Origin: Nageia nagi
Lineage: Eukaryota > Plantae > Pinophyta
Direction of reading: 5' to 3'
Length of the DNA: 64,000 nt
NCBI GenBank assembly: GCA_050084985.1
Contig: JBITNC010000001.1
Location: forward strand, 29,946,001 to 30,010,000
Below, piece after piece: positions 54,801-61,400 of the stretch. The translations under genes and the position numbers were made by a program. The notes below the pieces were generated by a model, which ran no database searches, was not told where the DNA came from, and was given only the letters and a program-made list of their open reading frames with translations. Each line of letters starts with the position of its first letter. Position 1 is the first letter of the stretch.

Positions 54801-57368
54801 CTTAATGATATAAATAAAGTATTAGCATTCATATCAAGATTTTATATAGAGGTAGTAGCTTTATCGATTGTTACAAATGCTTTTTCTTCAAAGAAGCTAA
54901 AAGTATTACAAACATGATCTTTGTATTTTGGTACTTTCATCATCTCTTAAAGTGTGACTAACACCTTAAATTTAGTAAATTAAACACCCACATAAAACAT
55001 TATTTTGTTAGGTTCCTTTTTCTTTTGAATAATTTCTTGATGAGGGGATGATTCCTATTGAGATCTTATCATTTCTTTCTAAGGATTCATCTCTACTTGA
55101 GTTTGTATATCATTTTAATTTTTTTCATTATTATGGCTCTTATTATTACCTTTTTTATTATATTGATTGTTTCTATCAAGAATTATTTTTTGTCTTAGAT
55201 TTATCCCATGAATGTCAATTATCTAGACTAATTCTTTGGTATCAACTTTGTGAAGGATCACAAGAATTGTTTTCTTTTTTGTTTGTGGAATATGATCTAA
55301 TGCAACCTCTATGGAACCTTGATCAATATATTCATGAGAAATAATAATATCATGCTTAAATTTGTTTCTCTCTACTCATCTTCAGCTCCCCATAACATAT
55401 TGATTTTTGAGACTTCACCTTTTTCTTTTGTTTCCTTCTAATCTGACAAAAACATGGCACAAACTATGGGGTTATGTGATAAATCACAAGAATATTAGTA
55501 TAATGGATATTCATTTTGGAAATTATCTATAAGTAGAGTAATGCGAACAAATTTTATACCTTTTTAAGCATCTCTATGCTTAAAATTATTATTTTACAGT
55601 CTATTAGAGTTTTTTAATAGAAGTATGGAATTAAGATTATTGGAGAAGGTTTATCCTATATTATGCTAAGGATGACTGCCTTTCCATTCTTGACAACTAG
55701 CTATTAAAATTTGAGAGTATTTTAGATATTTTCTTAATAATTGTTTCTTGGGAACTTTTTTAATATGAACAAAAAAATCTACTTTCCTAGGATTTCTTTC
55801 TATTATCAGATCTAAAGAACAAGGTTTCACCTTTCTTGTACATATCATTTCCCTTTCAATATTAAGAGTAGTATCCATACATTATTCTTTATCTTGAGAT
55901 CTAAAATATTTGAGCTCATATCTCATTTATCTAGGGAGAGATAATTTGTAATGGATAATGCATTATACATTTTTTGGTCTTAAATCCCCTGGTAATTTAT
56001 TTTTCATTTTAACAAATCTGGTATTGATGTTATCAATGGTTTCATTTTCTTTCTTATTGATTTTTGATAACTATATGAGTATAATTTGTTCATTATTCTT
56101 ATAACCATATTTTTTAAAAAAATATCCTCTAATGCATCATAGGTTCCTATTTAAGAAGCCAATAATGAATGAAACCATCATCGAGGTGGGGGGCTCTATT
56201 AGTAGGAAATGGTAAATAACATGTGAGTGCTACTAGGTGATATTTATGATATCAAGCTAAAGTATTGGTGTATTACTAGGGGTGAAGGGGTTTTTAGGAG
56301 GGGATAAAACATGTGTAATTGAATGGCATTTTATCTAGTTGGAATACCCAAACTCCCCCCTATATGATGATATTATTATTCTATTTCTCTTCAATTTTAT
56401 CATTTTGAGATAATTAAAATATTATTCTATTATTGATTTCATTTTAACATATTAAGTTAATTAATTAATTCATCTTTTTACTAAATCAAATTAATTAATA
56501 TTAAATTAAAGTTAGAGCCTAAGATCTAACCTTACCTTCAATTTACACAAAAAAAATATATCATTGAAGGTAATTTACCTACAATTACCCTTAAAATGTG
56601 TTCACATTTGGAGGCAATCATAGATTATGAGTGAAGATGATTTGGAATTTTTGGTTTATGCTGATAGGTTTTTTATTCATATAAATTTTAAACTTTTGAT
56701 TCAATTTCAAATTTTGGATCCATTATTTTATTTTATTAATTATTCACAGTTGAACATTTGACTCTCTCATCAATCAATGTAATTATAGAATGTCTCTTTA
56801 CATAATAAGAATTGATATGAAGGATTATAATCAATAATTTATCTATAATATGAAAATAAAATATAATTATATTTTAAACCAAGGTGATAATATTTTTTCC
56901 ATAGGTAAAAATAATATATAAAAAAGATAAAAATGATATTAATTAAACATGCAAAAGAATTTCAAATGTAAGAAAAATATACAAAATCTAAAATAAAAAT
57001 ATGATGTATAAGGAATATTGTTTGCCTTGTTTATCTCAAATCTATAACTATAATCAACCCTCATTTCCCTATAAACAAATTTTCTTATAGTAGGTGTATT
57101 TAATATAAGATAATTACAAATTTAAAATAAATATATAAGATAAAATGGGATGCTAATTGGTGTAATGAAAAATATATGATTCAAAGTACACTAACCGCAA
57201 CCATCCTTGGTGATTTAATCTAATGGTTTCAATGACTTTTGATCACAAATTCTTAAAGGCATAAACTAGTTATAATCCTCACCAATTTTCATATCAAGCA
57301 TTGTGTTGGTTGATTTGATTTGAATGTTCTATTTGAAGAATTATATTGTGCATTTTTTAGTATTAAGA

Positions 57369-57585
57369 ATGGAGGCAAGAGGTGCAAAAGTATAAGGGTT
57401 GAGGAAGGAAAGGTGAAGCCAAGAAGTTCCTCTCTATATTTTTGAATTCAAGGTGTCAATTACCTAATGTAAGAATCATAAGATATCTCAATAAGGGGAG
57501 GTATACGAAGAGGGTGGGACTTGGGCATTGGATCTCCCACCTATATAGCTTTTATGATGGAGTACTTGGTTGTTGAAGTACTTGA
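57369..57585 (+). pseudogene. Histone H2A (H2A.W-like) captured pseudogene, N-terminal half
   Basis: MEARGAKV*G...GEAKKFLSIFLNSRCQLPNVRIIRYLNKGRYTKRVG...GSPTYIAFMMEYLVVEVL versus H2A [44 protein letters not shown]. Confidence 0.88.
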
Positions 57586-58206: not shown

Positions 58207-58450
58207 ATGGAACTTGAGAAATGCAATCATCTAAAAAATCTAATGGTTCTTCCAAAAATAATAATAACCACATCATACCCCACCATGTCCTCCTCATTAT
58301 ACATAATGATGAAGATCTCGATAAGATTATGGATGGAGTAACCATCATCCATAATGGAGTCTCACCCAAGAACCACTAGGTCCTCCTCCCCAAGAAGTAA
58401 TCCTCATTTGTTGAAGATTCCAAGGAGCCCAAGTACCATAAAAAACCTAA
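58207..58450 (+). pseudogene. Histone H2A (H2A.W-like) captured pseudogene, C-terminal half
   Basis: [45 protein letters not shown] versus [47 protein letters not shown]. The tail ...SKEPK(t-a cca taa aaa acc taa) reads as a decayed KSPKK. Confidence 0.88.
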
Positions 58451-61400
58451 TAAATGAAGTATTAAATTATTCCTTTGTTATTTAATGGGCATTTAGTTCC
58501 TCTTATGTTAACCAATTTTTTTGGGTGTTATTACAAAATAAATGCAAACTGATTTGAACAAAACTTGTAAGAAAATGTATTTAATATATTTATTTAATGT
58601 ATTTTATTTGGTAAAATTATTTTATTAGTAAGGTCTTTACCAATTTTTTAGATGTAGTAATTTGATAGTTGTAAATTTGAAATTATTAGATTTGAATTAC
58701 AGAGAAGAAACATTTAGTTAGTTGCATAACAATAATGATTTGATGAGTAAAGAGCTTTTATATTTTTATTTTTATATTCATAATTTCATACTGCACTTAT
58801 AATATGAATATTATTTATTTGTATGTTAAGTTTTTATCTTTTTATTATTTTCTTAATATTATATAATTATTTATTTTCATTATATTTATTTCAATAATAA
58901 CATTTATTATTGACATCAAAATACATATAGCTATATAGATAGATTTAATTTTAAAGAATCACTTTAAGGGACTCTAAGTAAATTCTAATAAACCTTTTAT
59001 TGTAAGGTTGAAAAATGTAGAGGATTAGTTAATATAATTTTCAACTTCTTTCAAATATATGTTCAAAATAATATGGTTAAACTAATGGAAATGATTGATA
59101 GATAAATTTTTTAATGTATTATTAAACTCTCCAATTTGTAGCATCTATCTTGAAACATTTATGTAGAAGTAAGTATATATCAATTAAGTATTTCAATGAT
59201 ACTTTCTCATATAATTAAGTTGTATAAAAAAAATGTGAGGTTTATTTTATATTCTTTGTCCTCTCTCTCAAAAAGAGGGGACTTAAAAACAAACAATAGC
59301 AATATTTGAAAATAGATATACCATGAGGGATTTAATAAATTCAAAGAGGAGGTGGTAAATTTTAAAAATAGGGGGTTTTTTAATAAGTCTATGCATGCAC
59401 ATATTTTTAATCCTTTCCATTAAGAGACCTCCTGCCCCCTTCCTATGGAAGCCATTTTCTAGCATCTTTCTCTAGAGTTTGATAAAACAATATTAGAATA
59501 ATATATTATTATTCTACCTCTAAAATATCAAAAGCATAAAAGAAAGATTTTATGTGTTCTTCCCTAGTTATGATTGAGTTTCCCTAAAATAGAGGTAGAT
59601 GCTTGGAAGATTTTTTAGAAAGGTCATGTAATTGGGGCCAAATAGTCAGGTTTAATTTGTATATATATATAGTATTTTAATGCATCCTCCTATTCCTGAT
59701 AGCATTTTCACCTATTCTTGACATCCAAAATCCTAAAATTTTAGACCTAAGTGTTTTCTTATTAGTTTAAACACATAAATGATCTAGGAATGGACCCAAA
59801 TGATCCACATGAGCTTGTCAATGCTACTAGCTAGTTAGTACCCATATGGTAAGATTGATTAAAGTCTAGATTAACCAATCCTATTCAAATCTCTTCTAAT
59901 GTTCACTCCATAATGCTCATCCTATTGAGGAGACACCTCATATGTGACCCCACCATTTCCACTTCACAAACTATGCAACAAATATTTTGGACATGATGTA
60001 ATGGTTTCTTACTAAGGGCCCATATCACCTAAGAGAACATACATCCACTAGTTTACACATCCTCACTTGATGATAACCCTCTGAATCATAAGTGTAAATT
60101 GTTTTTCATAGAAAAATTTCTTTATGAGCGAAAAAATATCATCATCTATGGAATAGTCATCATACTCCTATGTGCTAAACTACAAGTAGTATGACTACTA
60201 AATTACCATCACCTAGTAATTATAGTTTTGTCAACTACTACCCTCATATGACACCTTATTAAGGATATGAGACACTAGCCTACCCATATCTATCATTTAG
60301 GCTCACGATGGGATCTAGCATCCCTATGCCCATATCTTGGGGAGCCGTGGGTATTGAAGTAATACCCTTGAGTGGTATGTATGGTATATATAATTTTAAG
60401 CAAGGTTATAAAATAAAACCACCCATGACCTATCAATTGTAAAATAATTGATCCCAATTCAATTATTTAGATTACTAATATCATAAGTAGGAAGATTCAA
60501 TAGCAAGCTTGTTTAGGAAGTCACAAAAGATATCTAGAAGTACTAAAATTATACCATATGCATGGTACTATGTAATTAATACTGCTTTATAAAAGTTCTC
60601 ATGCTATTGTTTAGTAACGTGCTTTGAGATGACACTAAATCAACTACTTCTATAGAGGAAGTGTGACATAAGTGGTCCTTACTCAAGGTATATTTCTTTC
60701 GCTTATCATTTTGCAAGGGAGGTTCAACTGACAAATATTCCACATCAATTTTCATCTATTATTGAGTCTATCCAAAATTCCCCTTTTTAAGTCAATTCTA
60801 TCATACTAGGGTTTTAACTTAAGTCATTATTTAATTTGAACTTCATACTTCATTAATAGATCCATCCTTTATTTAGGGCCACATTAGGGTTTACCATCAA
60901 GAACCCATATCTAAAACTCTAAATGATTACTTTATTGATCTAATTGACTCCTAAGTCTTCCATATTTCTTCATTAATGTAAGTCACCTTTACTAAGTAGT
61001 TCTCATCTTATCGATATTACCCTAATCTTATAAGAACCCATTTTGATCCCTTTCAATAGTTAAGGGTCCCTAAAAACTTCTTAATTATTTTCCATTAGGA
61101 TTACCTATTAATTGAATTTCTTACAATGTATTCTTGTACAAATGGATTTAGTTCACTTTTAGGACTCATATGCAAAACTTAGGATTAATAATATCAATCC
61201 CTAATTACTTATTTAGTGTCACTTGAATTTGACATCTCTTCTTCTTTTCATAGTGTGAGTTATGTTTTGTCTTGAGAACATACTAGGGTAATGGAATTTC
61301 TCAATTCACACTCATACAAGATAAATAAATATAATTACAATTTTTTTGTGTTTATATTTTATATGAATATACTTAAGCTATTCCATTAAATTTCTAAGTA

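Follow-up and report, generated by a model that had tools for sequence, protein, structure and literature searches.

Closest described systems

The closest described systems for the locus presented here are the Pack-TYPE and Pack-hAT elements of maize and rice (Gisby and Catoni 2022, PMC8903248). As in a Pack-hAT, the TIR element is non-autonomous, has an 8-nt TSD but no transposase, and contains internal DNA from more than one donor gene. However, the locus is represented by one fossil copy only; neither a family cluster nor an autonomous partner is seen in the window (the whole analysed stretch, 64 kb), and its TIR departs from the hAT motif. The cargo also differs: an entire intron-less CDS is carried here, not genomic exon–intron pieces.

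A study of Platycladus (PMC13477047) describes the capture of gene fragments by TEs en masse in gymnosperm giga-genomes, Welwitschia included; a minority of TEs, about 14%, hold at least two fragments. The captured coding fragments covered by the study are old, methylated and decayed, as at the present locus. The survey is statistical in nature, and a histone–LRR–histone arrangement and its relation to an intron site are not known to be described in it.

Processed or chimeric retrocopies, formed by template switching of reverse transcriptase, are a further likeness. The intron-less, full-length sense CDS, a possible polyadenylation signal, flanking direct repeats and sequence of a second gene are shared with them, but these hallmarks are weak here; a clean poly(A) is missing, and the significance of the repeat is borderline. 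In the fungus Pyrenophora tritici-repentis, a histone H3-like gene has reportedly undergone hAT-mediated transduplication. Both cases involve a DNA transposon, hAT-type in the fungus and most likely hAT-like here, that bears a histone gene copy, but the fungal one concerns H3 and multiple recent copies, whereas in the present seed plant one dead, interrupted copy of H2A.W is found.

The reading preferred here, with a probability of about 0.7, is that the locus is a long-dead non-autonomous TIR transposon lying in the gag of an LTR retrotransposon and carrying an intron-less H2A.W sequence interrupted by BRL2 LRR sequence. It is a real but ordinary instance of gene pieces travelling in plant transposons. 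The locus provides a well-bounded example of such shuffling in a giant, heavily methylated gymnosperm genome. What is new is the carriage of a complete intron-less histone-variant CDS with an LRR block 9 nt from the conserved intron site, which bears on the DNA or RNA origin of the cargo. Surveys of gymnosperm genomes already give hundreds of thousands of captured fragments, and no new question is opened.

Architecture of the insertion

The interval 56179–59447 is a TIR-plus-TSD insertion without a transposase (Table 1); a Pfam search found no domain of any kind in the ORFs of the element arms. Its ends read 5′ CATCGAGG... and ...CCTTCCTATG 3′, with CAT...ATG termini, in agreement with the 3.27-kb insertion with CAT-starting ends originally proposed. 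The TIR is about 50 bp long, degenerate and interrupted by indels; positions 56183–56230 are about 70% identical to the reverse complement of 59393–59438. The alignment score exceeds that of shuffled sequences (z about 5.7–6), and internal control offsets give background values. The TSD has the expected length of 8 bp, but its copies are not perfectly identical, as had been thought. Among 8-mer pairs taken at the same spacing across the window, only 0.12% agree at 7/8 or more positions (empirical P 0.0012). The duplication cannot be extended to 9 bp; extension fails on either side.

Table 1. Coordinates of the features recognised at the locus (positions in the window).
Feature	Position	Strand	Details
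Host retrotransposon gag, portion downstream of the insertion	55669–56178	−	WFHSLLAS*IGTYDALEDIFLKN...; motif, codon phase
Left TSD copy	56171–56178		GAAACCAT; 7/8 bases equal to right copy
Inserted non-autonomous TIR element	56179–59447	+	3269 bp; GC 27%, CpG o/e 0.12
5′ TIR	56179–56230	+	CATCGAGGTGGGGGGCTC...CATGTGAGTGC; local alignment to reverse complement of 3′ end, z 5.7–6
H2A.W-like N-half	57369–57586	+	ATG, decayed N-tail, then HTA7 aa 23–74; 2 in-frame stops, 2 frameshifts
BRL2-like LRR ectodomain fragment	57587–58241	+	About AtBRL2 aa 260–455; three frames, several stops
H2A.W-like C-half	58242–58457	+	HTA7 aa 78–148, K/P-rich tail KEPKYHKKPNK, stop 58455–58457; 2 internal stops
Possible retrocopy hallmarks (weak)	58537–58588	+	AATAAA (58537–58542), A-rich stretch, 13-nt repeat TGTATTTAATATA (58576–58588)
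3′ TIR	59393–59447	−	Reverse complement CATAGGAAGGGGGCAGGAGG...ATATGTGCATGC; local alignment to 5′ end
Right TSD copy	59448–59455		GAAGCCAT; 7/8 bases equal to left copy
Host retrotransposon gag, portion upstream of the insertion	59448–59766	−	...FYQTLEKDARKWL; motif, codon phase

On the minus strand, the right flank finishes with ...FYQTLEKDARKWL and the left flank begins with WFHSLLAS*IGTYDALEDIFLKN. Both TSD copies have the same codon phase (A-TGG-YTT-C), so the insert together with one TSD copy constitutes an in-frame interruption of gag. The two motif halves are thus in phase, and excision restores the host frame, as was first suggested. Elsewhere in the window lies a gag that is unrelated and uninterrupted (25291–25485, minus strand); it reads ...LDWYKTLLANSISTW... 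with a single W and matches Pfam Retrotrans_gag with an E-value of 0.0036, at a score below the gathering threshold. A Pfam search did not recognise gag in the host pieces flanking the insertion, so the name 'gag' for the host relies on the motif match with 25291–25485.

Composition of the cargo

The centre of the element contains a full-length intron-less H2A.W copy broken near codon 75 by about 655 bp of BRL2 LRR sequence in the same orientation. A tblastn search of the entire 64-kb window with Arabidopsis H2A.W.7 (HTA7) gave three colinear plus-strand HSPs and none elsewhere: aa 23–56 at 57424–57525, aa 53–74 at 57521–57586 and aa 78–148 at 58242–58454 (E 4e-14). Together with the colinearity of the middle part with BRL2, this bears out the earlier proposal of an H2A.W-like cargo on the plus strand in the order N-half, LRR, C-half. 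The C-half stop is present as well, slightly beyond the position of about 58450 given for it. Pfam did not recognise a histone in the short decayed cargo pieces; a PDB sequence search and the local HTA7 tblastn did.

The cargo is nearer to H2A.W than it is to H2A.X, H2A.Z or the canonical H2A. The best plant PDB matches of both halves are Arabidopsis H2A.W (HTA7 and HTA6), above canonical H2A; for the C-half, the E-value is 3e-9 for HTA7/HTA6 and 9e-7 for Arabidopsis canonical H2A. The L1 loop of H2A.W has the signature RY[A/S][Q/K] (PMC12459048). In the element, the L1 loop of the N-half reads KGRYTKRVG, where RYTK fits three of the four signature positions and the T in place of A/S is one G-to-A transition away from Ala. 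A PDB search with the L1 stretch ranked H2A.W first, but weakly (E 0.026). The docking-region residues are VLLII, compared with LLLAI in H2A.W. The C-terminal tail is H2A.W-like in length and in its K/P richness and aligns to the tail of HTA7; it holds no intact SPKK, and the KSPKK tail named in the preliminary description is not intact.

The LRR block, also anticipated as an insert of LRR coding sequence in H2A, is BRL2-like and 655 bp long, filling the space between HTA7 aa 74 and 78; the limits of 57586–58204 previously assigned to it are corrected in Table 1. It is colinear with the BRL2 ectodomain, and its pieces lie on AtBRL2 in the order 287–350, 352–411 (E 6.6e-16) and 415–454. Its colinear best match is to BRL2 (BRI1-like 2) and not to other LRR-RLKs. 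Two of the four pieces are clearly closest to BRL2, with an E-value of 6.6e-16 against 1.5e-7 for BRI1 in one case and of 3.6e-5 with no other RLK in the other; the first piece is a generic LRR. The junction zones of the cargo are imprecise by about 10–20 nt (57579–57597 and 58236–58254), and in an alternative parse exon 2 begins (GTTCTT) at 58246 and a further 22 nt have been deleted. A repeat at the LRR borders, AAACTAAT/AAATCTAAT, cannot be told from LRR periodicity. A nested TIR element around the LRR block was considered and rejected, with LRR coding sequence reaching both borders.

Comparison of the genomic and spliced HTA7 sequences reveals a single intron of 87 nt, located between E71 and V72. 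At this site, taken from the Arabidopsis position, the element reads GAA GTA CTT GAT uninterrupted, without an intron; the LRR block begins 9 nt further on. Because the histone sequence is intron-free and the LRR block starts near this site, the cargo may have arisen as a processed copy or by exon-by-exon capture, not by two simple genomic captures. The two sequential captures originally envisaged are accordingly not established. The intron-free H2A and the position of the LRR block point as much to an RNA-derived copy, exon-wise capture or templated insertion as to those captures. An Rfam search gave no credible match.

Classification of the element

The locus fits the Pack-type description: it has TIRs and a TSD, lacks a transposase and contains internal sequence that comes from host genes. 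Judged solely by its 8-bp duplication, the element is most likely hAT-like. Elements of the hAT type have short TIRs and the terminal motif YARNG; the termini here are CATCG and CATAG (CATNG), with T where YARNG has R at position 3. The suggested hAT membership is therefore only partly borne out: the 8-bp TSD, in phase with the split gag codons, speaks for it, but the YARNG motif is absent and no partner is seen in the window. A blastn search of the window with the element and both flanks found no sibling or autonomous copies, and exact and 3-mismatch searches of the window found neither terminus elsewhere. A transition-tolerant, purine/pyrimidine-coded scan of the window for the termini returned only 40-mers at chance level. 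No copy of the element without the LRR block is present in the window. A protein search with the LRR/H2A junction found only large multi-LRR proteins, the summed repeats of which swamp short sibling ORFs.

Pack-MULEs have TSDs of 9–11 bp and long TIRs starting with G. The preliminary description had taken a 9-bp TSD with G-starting TIRs as the mark of an ordinary Pack-MULE; neither is seen at the element's own ends, where the duplication measures 8 bp and both termini begin with CAT. That the element is nevertheless Mutator-like is quite unlikely. Its TIR of about 50 bp is longer than most hAT TIRs, its subterminal motifs are G-rich and Pack-MULEs are the commonest gene-carrying TIR elements of plants (PMC8903248), but the duplication of 8 bp does not extend to 9 bp, the first base is C and the codon phase of the gag halves suits exactly 8 duplicated bases.

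Origin of the cargo

According to the preferred reading, a non-autonomous TIR element, most likely hAT-like, inserted into the gag of an LTR retrotransposon and generated the 8-bp duplication. In the most likely history, a copy of H2A.W lacking its intron would have come to sit inside the element, and a break in this copy would then have been repaired off an ectopic BRL2 template, either by template switching or by a templated insertion of the filler type. Repair of a break in a continuous copy would account for the return of the histone sequence no more than three codons from its stopping point. Methylation-driven C-to-T decay has since ruined all reading frames.

The resumption within three codons is more typical of insertion into a continuous copy than of independent captures, which tells against a classical Pack-hAT origin, where the genomic H2A exon 1 region, a BRL2 fragment and the H2A exon 2 region would have been captured separately through template switching or remobilisation of tandem insertions. 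Captured genomic DNA also normally retains introns, none of which is found here, and no siblings showing intermediate stages occur within the window. The general make-up of the locus, namely a TIR, an 8-bp TSD, no transposase and pieces of two unlinked genes, is nonetheless that of such an element; Pack-hATs exist, and Pack-TYPE elements take up DNA internally (PMC8903248). The LRR block also lies no more than 9 nt from the boundary of exons 1 and 2, which suits exon-wise capture skipping a long gymnosperm intron. This origin is possible but rather unlikely. An origin in which the histone–LRR unit landed in a resident non-autonomous transposon as a LINE-mediated processed retrocopy, instead of being captured by the transposon, is considered unlikely. 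It would stem from mRNA of H2A.W, which might have been chimeric or exonised, or from a product of reverse transcriptase template switching. In line with it are the full-length CDS, the absence of an intron where H2A.W conserves one and the sense orientation of all three parts. An AATAAA 80 nt past the stop, with A-rich sequence behind it, and a 13-nt direct repeat on either side of 57108–58575 point the same way. This repeat, however, which recurs at 57095–57107, has a chance P of about 0.06 and lies in a 13-nt tandem within a low-complexity region. A clean poly(A) is lacking, and the 5′ UTR that this origin implies, 261 nt, is long for a histone gene. Under the alternative parse, the LRR borders would both be exon borders, ending in GAA and beginning with GTTCTT, as in spliced RNA, but this requires the additional 22-nt deletion and makes the VLD match coincidental.

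It is very unlikely that the element is a relic of a DNA transposon family whose members formerly contained an H2A.W gene that was whole and could be expressed (from ATG to stop, with an upstream region and a polyadenylation signal), with BRL2 insertion and decay coming later. The histone variant in which silenced transposons are packaged would then itself have had a mobile copy.

Present state of the element

The cargo is dead, with every reading frame destroyed. It contains at least 8 in-frame stops and 4 frameshifts, and the genome in which it lies is 29% GC and CpG-depleted. The histone–LRR–histone chimera proposed earlier is thus present as an order of sequences, but not as an intact gene; stops and frameshifts are numerous, as in a pseudogene. 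Nothing suggests a present function, and the element today appears to do nothing beyond marking an old capture event. That the element gives rise to siRNAs directed at H2A.W and BRL2 of the host, as was also raised in the preliminary description, is unlikely today, because the conserved segment of the C-half is only 45% identical to HTA7 in protein and the DNA is strongly deaminated.

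Boundaries and classification of the element

Direct reading of 55900–59700 places the ends of the 3.27-kb non-autonomous element at CATCGAGGTGGGGGGCTC (5′) and CCTGCCCCCTTCCTATG (3′). The preliminary description of an insertion with an 8-bp TSD and CAT-starting termini is borne out: the TSD copies, GAAACCAT before the element and GAAGCCAT after it, are identical at 7/8 positions, and only 0.12% of 60,715 equally spaced 8-mer pairs in the window match as well. The CAT common to both ends precedes the TIR, which local alignment recovered as a single inverted repeat with two small indels, about 70% identity and a z of 5.7–6 versus shuffles. 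Internal control segments of equal size gave background alignment scores, and the inverted repeat does not extend past about 55 nt.

The terminal motif of hAT elements is YARNG. The proposed hAT assignment is favoured by the 8-bp TSD, but the termini of the element are CATNG and its TIR is longer than usual for hAT. The flanking bases do not lengthen the TSD to 9 bp, and the first base of either end is C; thus, the reclassification as a Pack-MULE, which had been tied to a 9-bp TSD and G-starting TIRs, does not apply. No ORF in the arms had a Pfam match, no sibling copy was found within the 64-kb window, and the element is not known to have a transposase-bearing relative. 'hAT-like' is the best guess, at slightly better than even odds.

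Coordinates of the features of the element (window positions)
Feature	Position	Strand	Counterpart	Remark
TSD copies	56171–56178; 59448–59455
Element	56179–59447	+
TIR	56183–56230	 	59393–59438	reverse complement of counterpart
13-mer TGTATTTAATATA	57095–57107; 58576–58588	 	 	exact direct repeat
Histone ATG	57369	+
HTA7 HSP 1	57424–57525	+	HTA7 aa 23–56	tblastn
HTA7 HSP 2	57521–57586	+	HTA7 aa 53–74	tblastn
LRR piece	57597–57752	+	 	generic LRR
LRR piece	57728–57940	+	Arabidopsis BRL2 aa 287–350	E 3.6e-5; no other receptor kinase among listed matches
LRR piece	57937–58119	+	Arabidopsis BRL2 aa 352–411	E 6.6e-16, vs BRI1 1.5e-7
LRR piece	58129–58260	+	Arabidopsis BRL2 aa 415–454	single stretch
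HTA7 HSP 3	58242–58454	+	HTA7 aa 78–148	tblastn, E 4e-14
Histone stop	58455–58457	+
AATAAA	58537–58542	 	 	80 nt past stop

Histone and LRR cargo

Cargo searches used stop-free pieces one at a time, with the histone halves kept separate and stops respected. The C-half piece 58218–58376 matches H2A in the PDB, with Arabidopsis H2A.W proteins as the best plant entries (HTA7, 3.3e-9; HTA6, 3.4e-9) and canonical Arabidopsis H2A behind at 9e-7. HTA7 and HTA6 are also the top PDB matches, weakly, of the L1-loop piece 57448–57525 (E 0.026), and piece 57482–57625 aligns to a 22-letter protein stretch. The PDB alignment supplied a 13-residue H2A.W stretch whose degenerate DNA pattern, searched for in metagenome contigs, retrieved L001 (genomic) and L002 (spliced). 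The 150-aa HTA7 protein translated from L002 served as a tblastn query against the whole window and gave just three HSPs, all within the element, on the plus strand and colinear. With the BRL2 matches between them, they confirm the order of H2A.W-like N-half, LRR and C-half on one strand. From its ATG to its stop, the histone cargo is a full-length H2A.W-type CDS in which residues 75–77 alone are missing. Its L1 loop is RYTK, versus RY[A/S][Q/K] among the H2A.W markers listed in PMC12459048; the tail, KEPKYHKKPNK*, is K/P rich and of H2A.W length, and the KSPKK motif is not intact in it.

Both L001 (2037–3852) and L002 contain the HTA7 gene in Arabidopsis-type form, derived from host DNA or RNA of a plant-associated sample. 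Beyond the HTA7 3′ UTR, L002 continues into exons of a downstream RRM-protein gene, owing either to read-through or to a join in the assembly.

For unrelated LRR proteins, alignment is confined to ~57580–58250. Together with the colinear BRL2 matches, these limits indicate that the LRR block is one colinear, intron-free BRL2-type ectodomain fragment in sense orientation; its size is 655 bp, against ~620 bp in the preliminary description. The strings AAACTAAT (57591–57598) and AAATCTAAT (58236–58244) lie at its two borders and could be a short duplication, microhomology or mere LRR periodicity.

The histone–LRR copy is old and dead. The histone cargo spans three reading frames with four internal stops, and the LRR block three frames with at least four; even the conserved C-half segment (71 residues) has just 45% identity to HTA7. 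GC is 27% and CpG o/e 0.12 in the element (arms, 15–25% GC), and 29.0% and 0.07 in the whole window. The Welwitschia genome is exceptionally GC-poor and deamination-shaped, at 29.07% GC (PMC8275611).

Origin of the chimera

Comparison of L001 with L002 shows just one intron in HTA7, of 87 nt (L001 2313–2399, gtaagt...ctcag), in phase 0 between E71 (GAA) and V72 (GTT). At this site the element reads GTT GTT GAA GTA CTT GAT (V V E V L D), uninterrupted, so its histone copy has no intron. Only 9 nt separate the old exon border from the start of the LRR block downstream; by our own estimate, a position chosen at random along a CDS of 450 nt would come to within 12 nt of any one site in about 1 of 20 cases. 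Junction zones of 10–20 nt can plausibly be read both as histone and as LRR. The preferred parse runs as histone to aa 74, then the LRR block, then histone again in frame at N78, and so looks like an insertion into a continuous histone copy; a break in that copy may have been repaired by copying an ectopic template. There remains an alternative parse with the LRR block directly after GAA, the end of exon 1, and with exon 2 starting from GTTCTT (58246). Both LRR borders would then be exon borders, a pattern that a spliced chimeric RNA or exon-by-exon capture would give, but a 22-nt deletion is involved.

Beyond the stop, AATAAA and then an A-rich stretch directly precede the 3′ copy of TGTATTTAATATA, whose two copies flank the histone–LRR unit. 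These are suggestive only as hints of a retrocopy: a repeat of 13-nt length appears in 6% of Markov shuffles, and the 3′ copy sits in a 13-nt tandem tract.

The element and its cargo are real and well bounded, and of a kind already known. Maize and rice have Pack-TYPE elements from every TIR superfamily, among them Pack-hAT with 8-nt TSDs, as in the element (PMC8903248). A 2026 survey that included Welwitschia puts the gene fragments captured by TEs at ~400,000 per gymnosperm genome and gives at least two fragments for ~14% of carrier TEs (PMC13477047). The suggestion that the element could yield siRNAs against host H2A.W and BRL2 genes matches the known concept of 'epigenetic conflict'; it is unsupported at this element and unlikely at the present divergence.

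Host retrotransposon

The two host flanks were compared as they stand, unjoined and unrepaired. On the minus strand, ...FYQTLEKDARKWL closes the right flank and WFHSLLAS*IGTYDALEDIFLKNMV... opens the left one. Both TSD copies are in identical codon phase (A|TGG|YTT|C), so the element with one TSD copy is an in-frame interruption of the host, in agreement with the preliminary description. Pfam recognised no domain in the short decayed host pieces. An unrelated decayed gag at 25291–25485 (minus strand; Pfam Retrotrans_gag E 0.0036, under the gathering score) reads ...SKKVLDWYKTLLANSISTWVQLAKALILKF and also contains …LDWYKTLLANSISTWVQLAKALILKF…; it is uninterrupted and was used as comparison only, and a local tblastn of the host piece was run with one stop written as X. 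The host motif is present in it with a single W, and on this shared motif the host is taken as a probable gag region, with moderate support.

Pfam was silent on short pieces of 53933–54841 (minus strand). A protease-like MDTRAS string of the host element lies at 54722–54841, and RNase H-like strings (YFDGKK…, NNVCKYEALQ, VLIFEDAKLIINHIKG) at 53933–54225, only ~600 nt past it, both on the minus strand. This protease-then-RNase H order is odd, and another nested element may be present.
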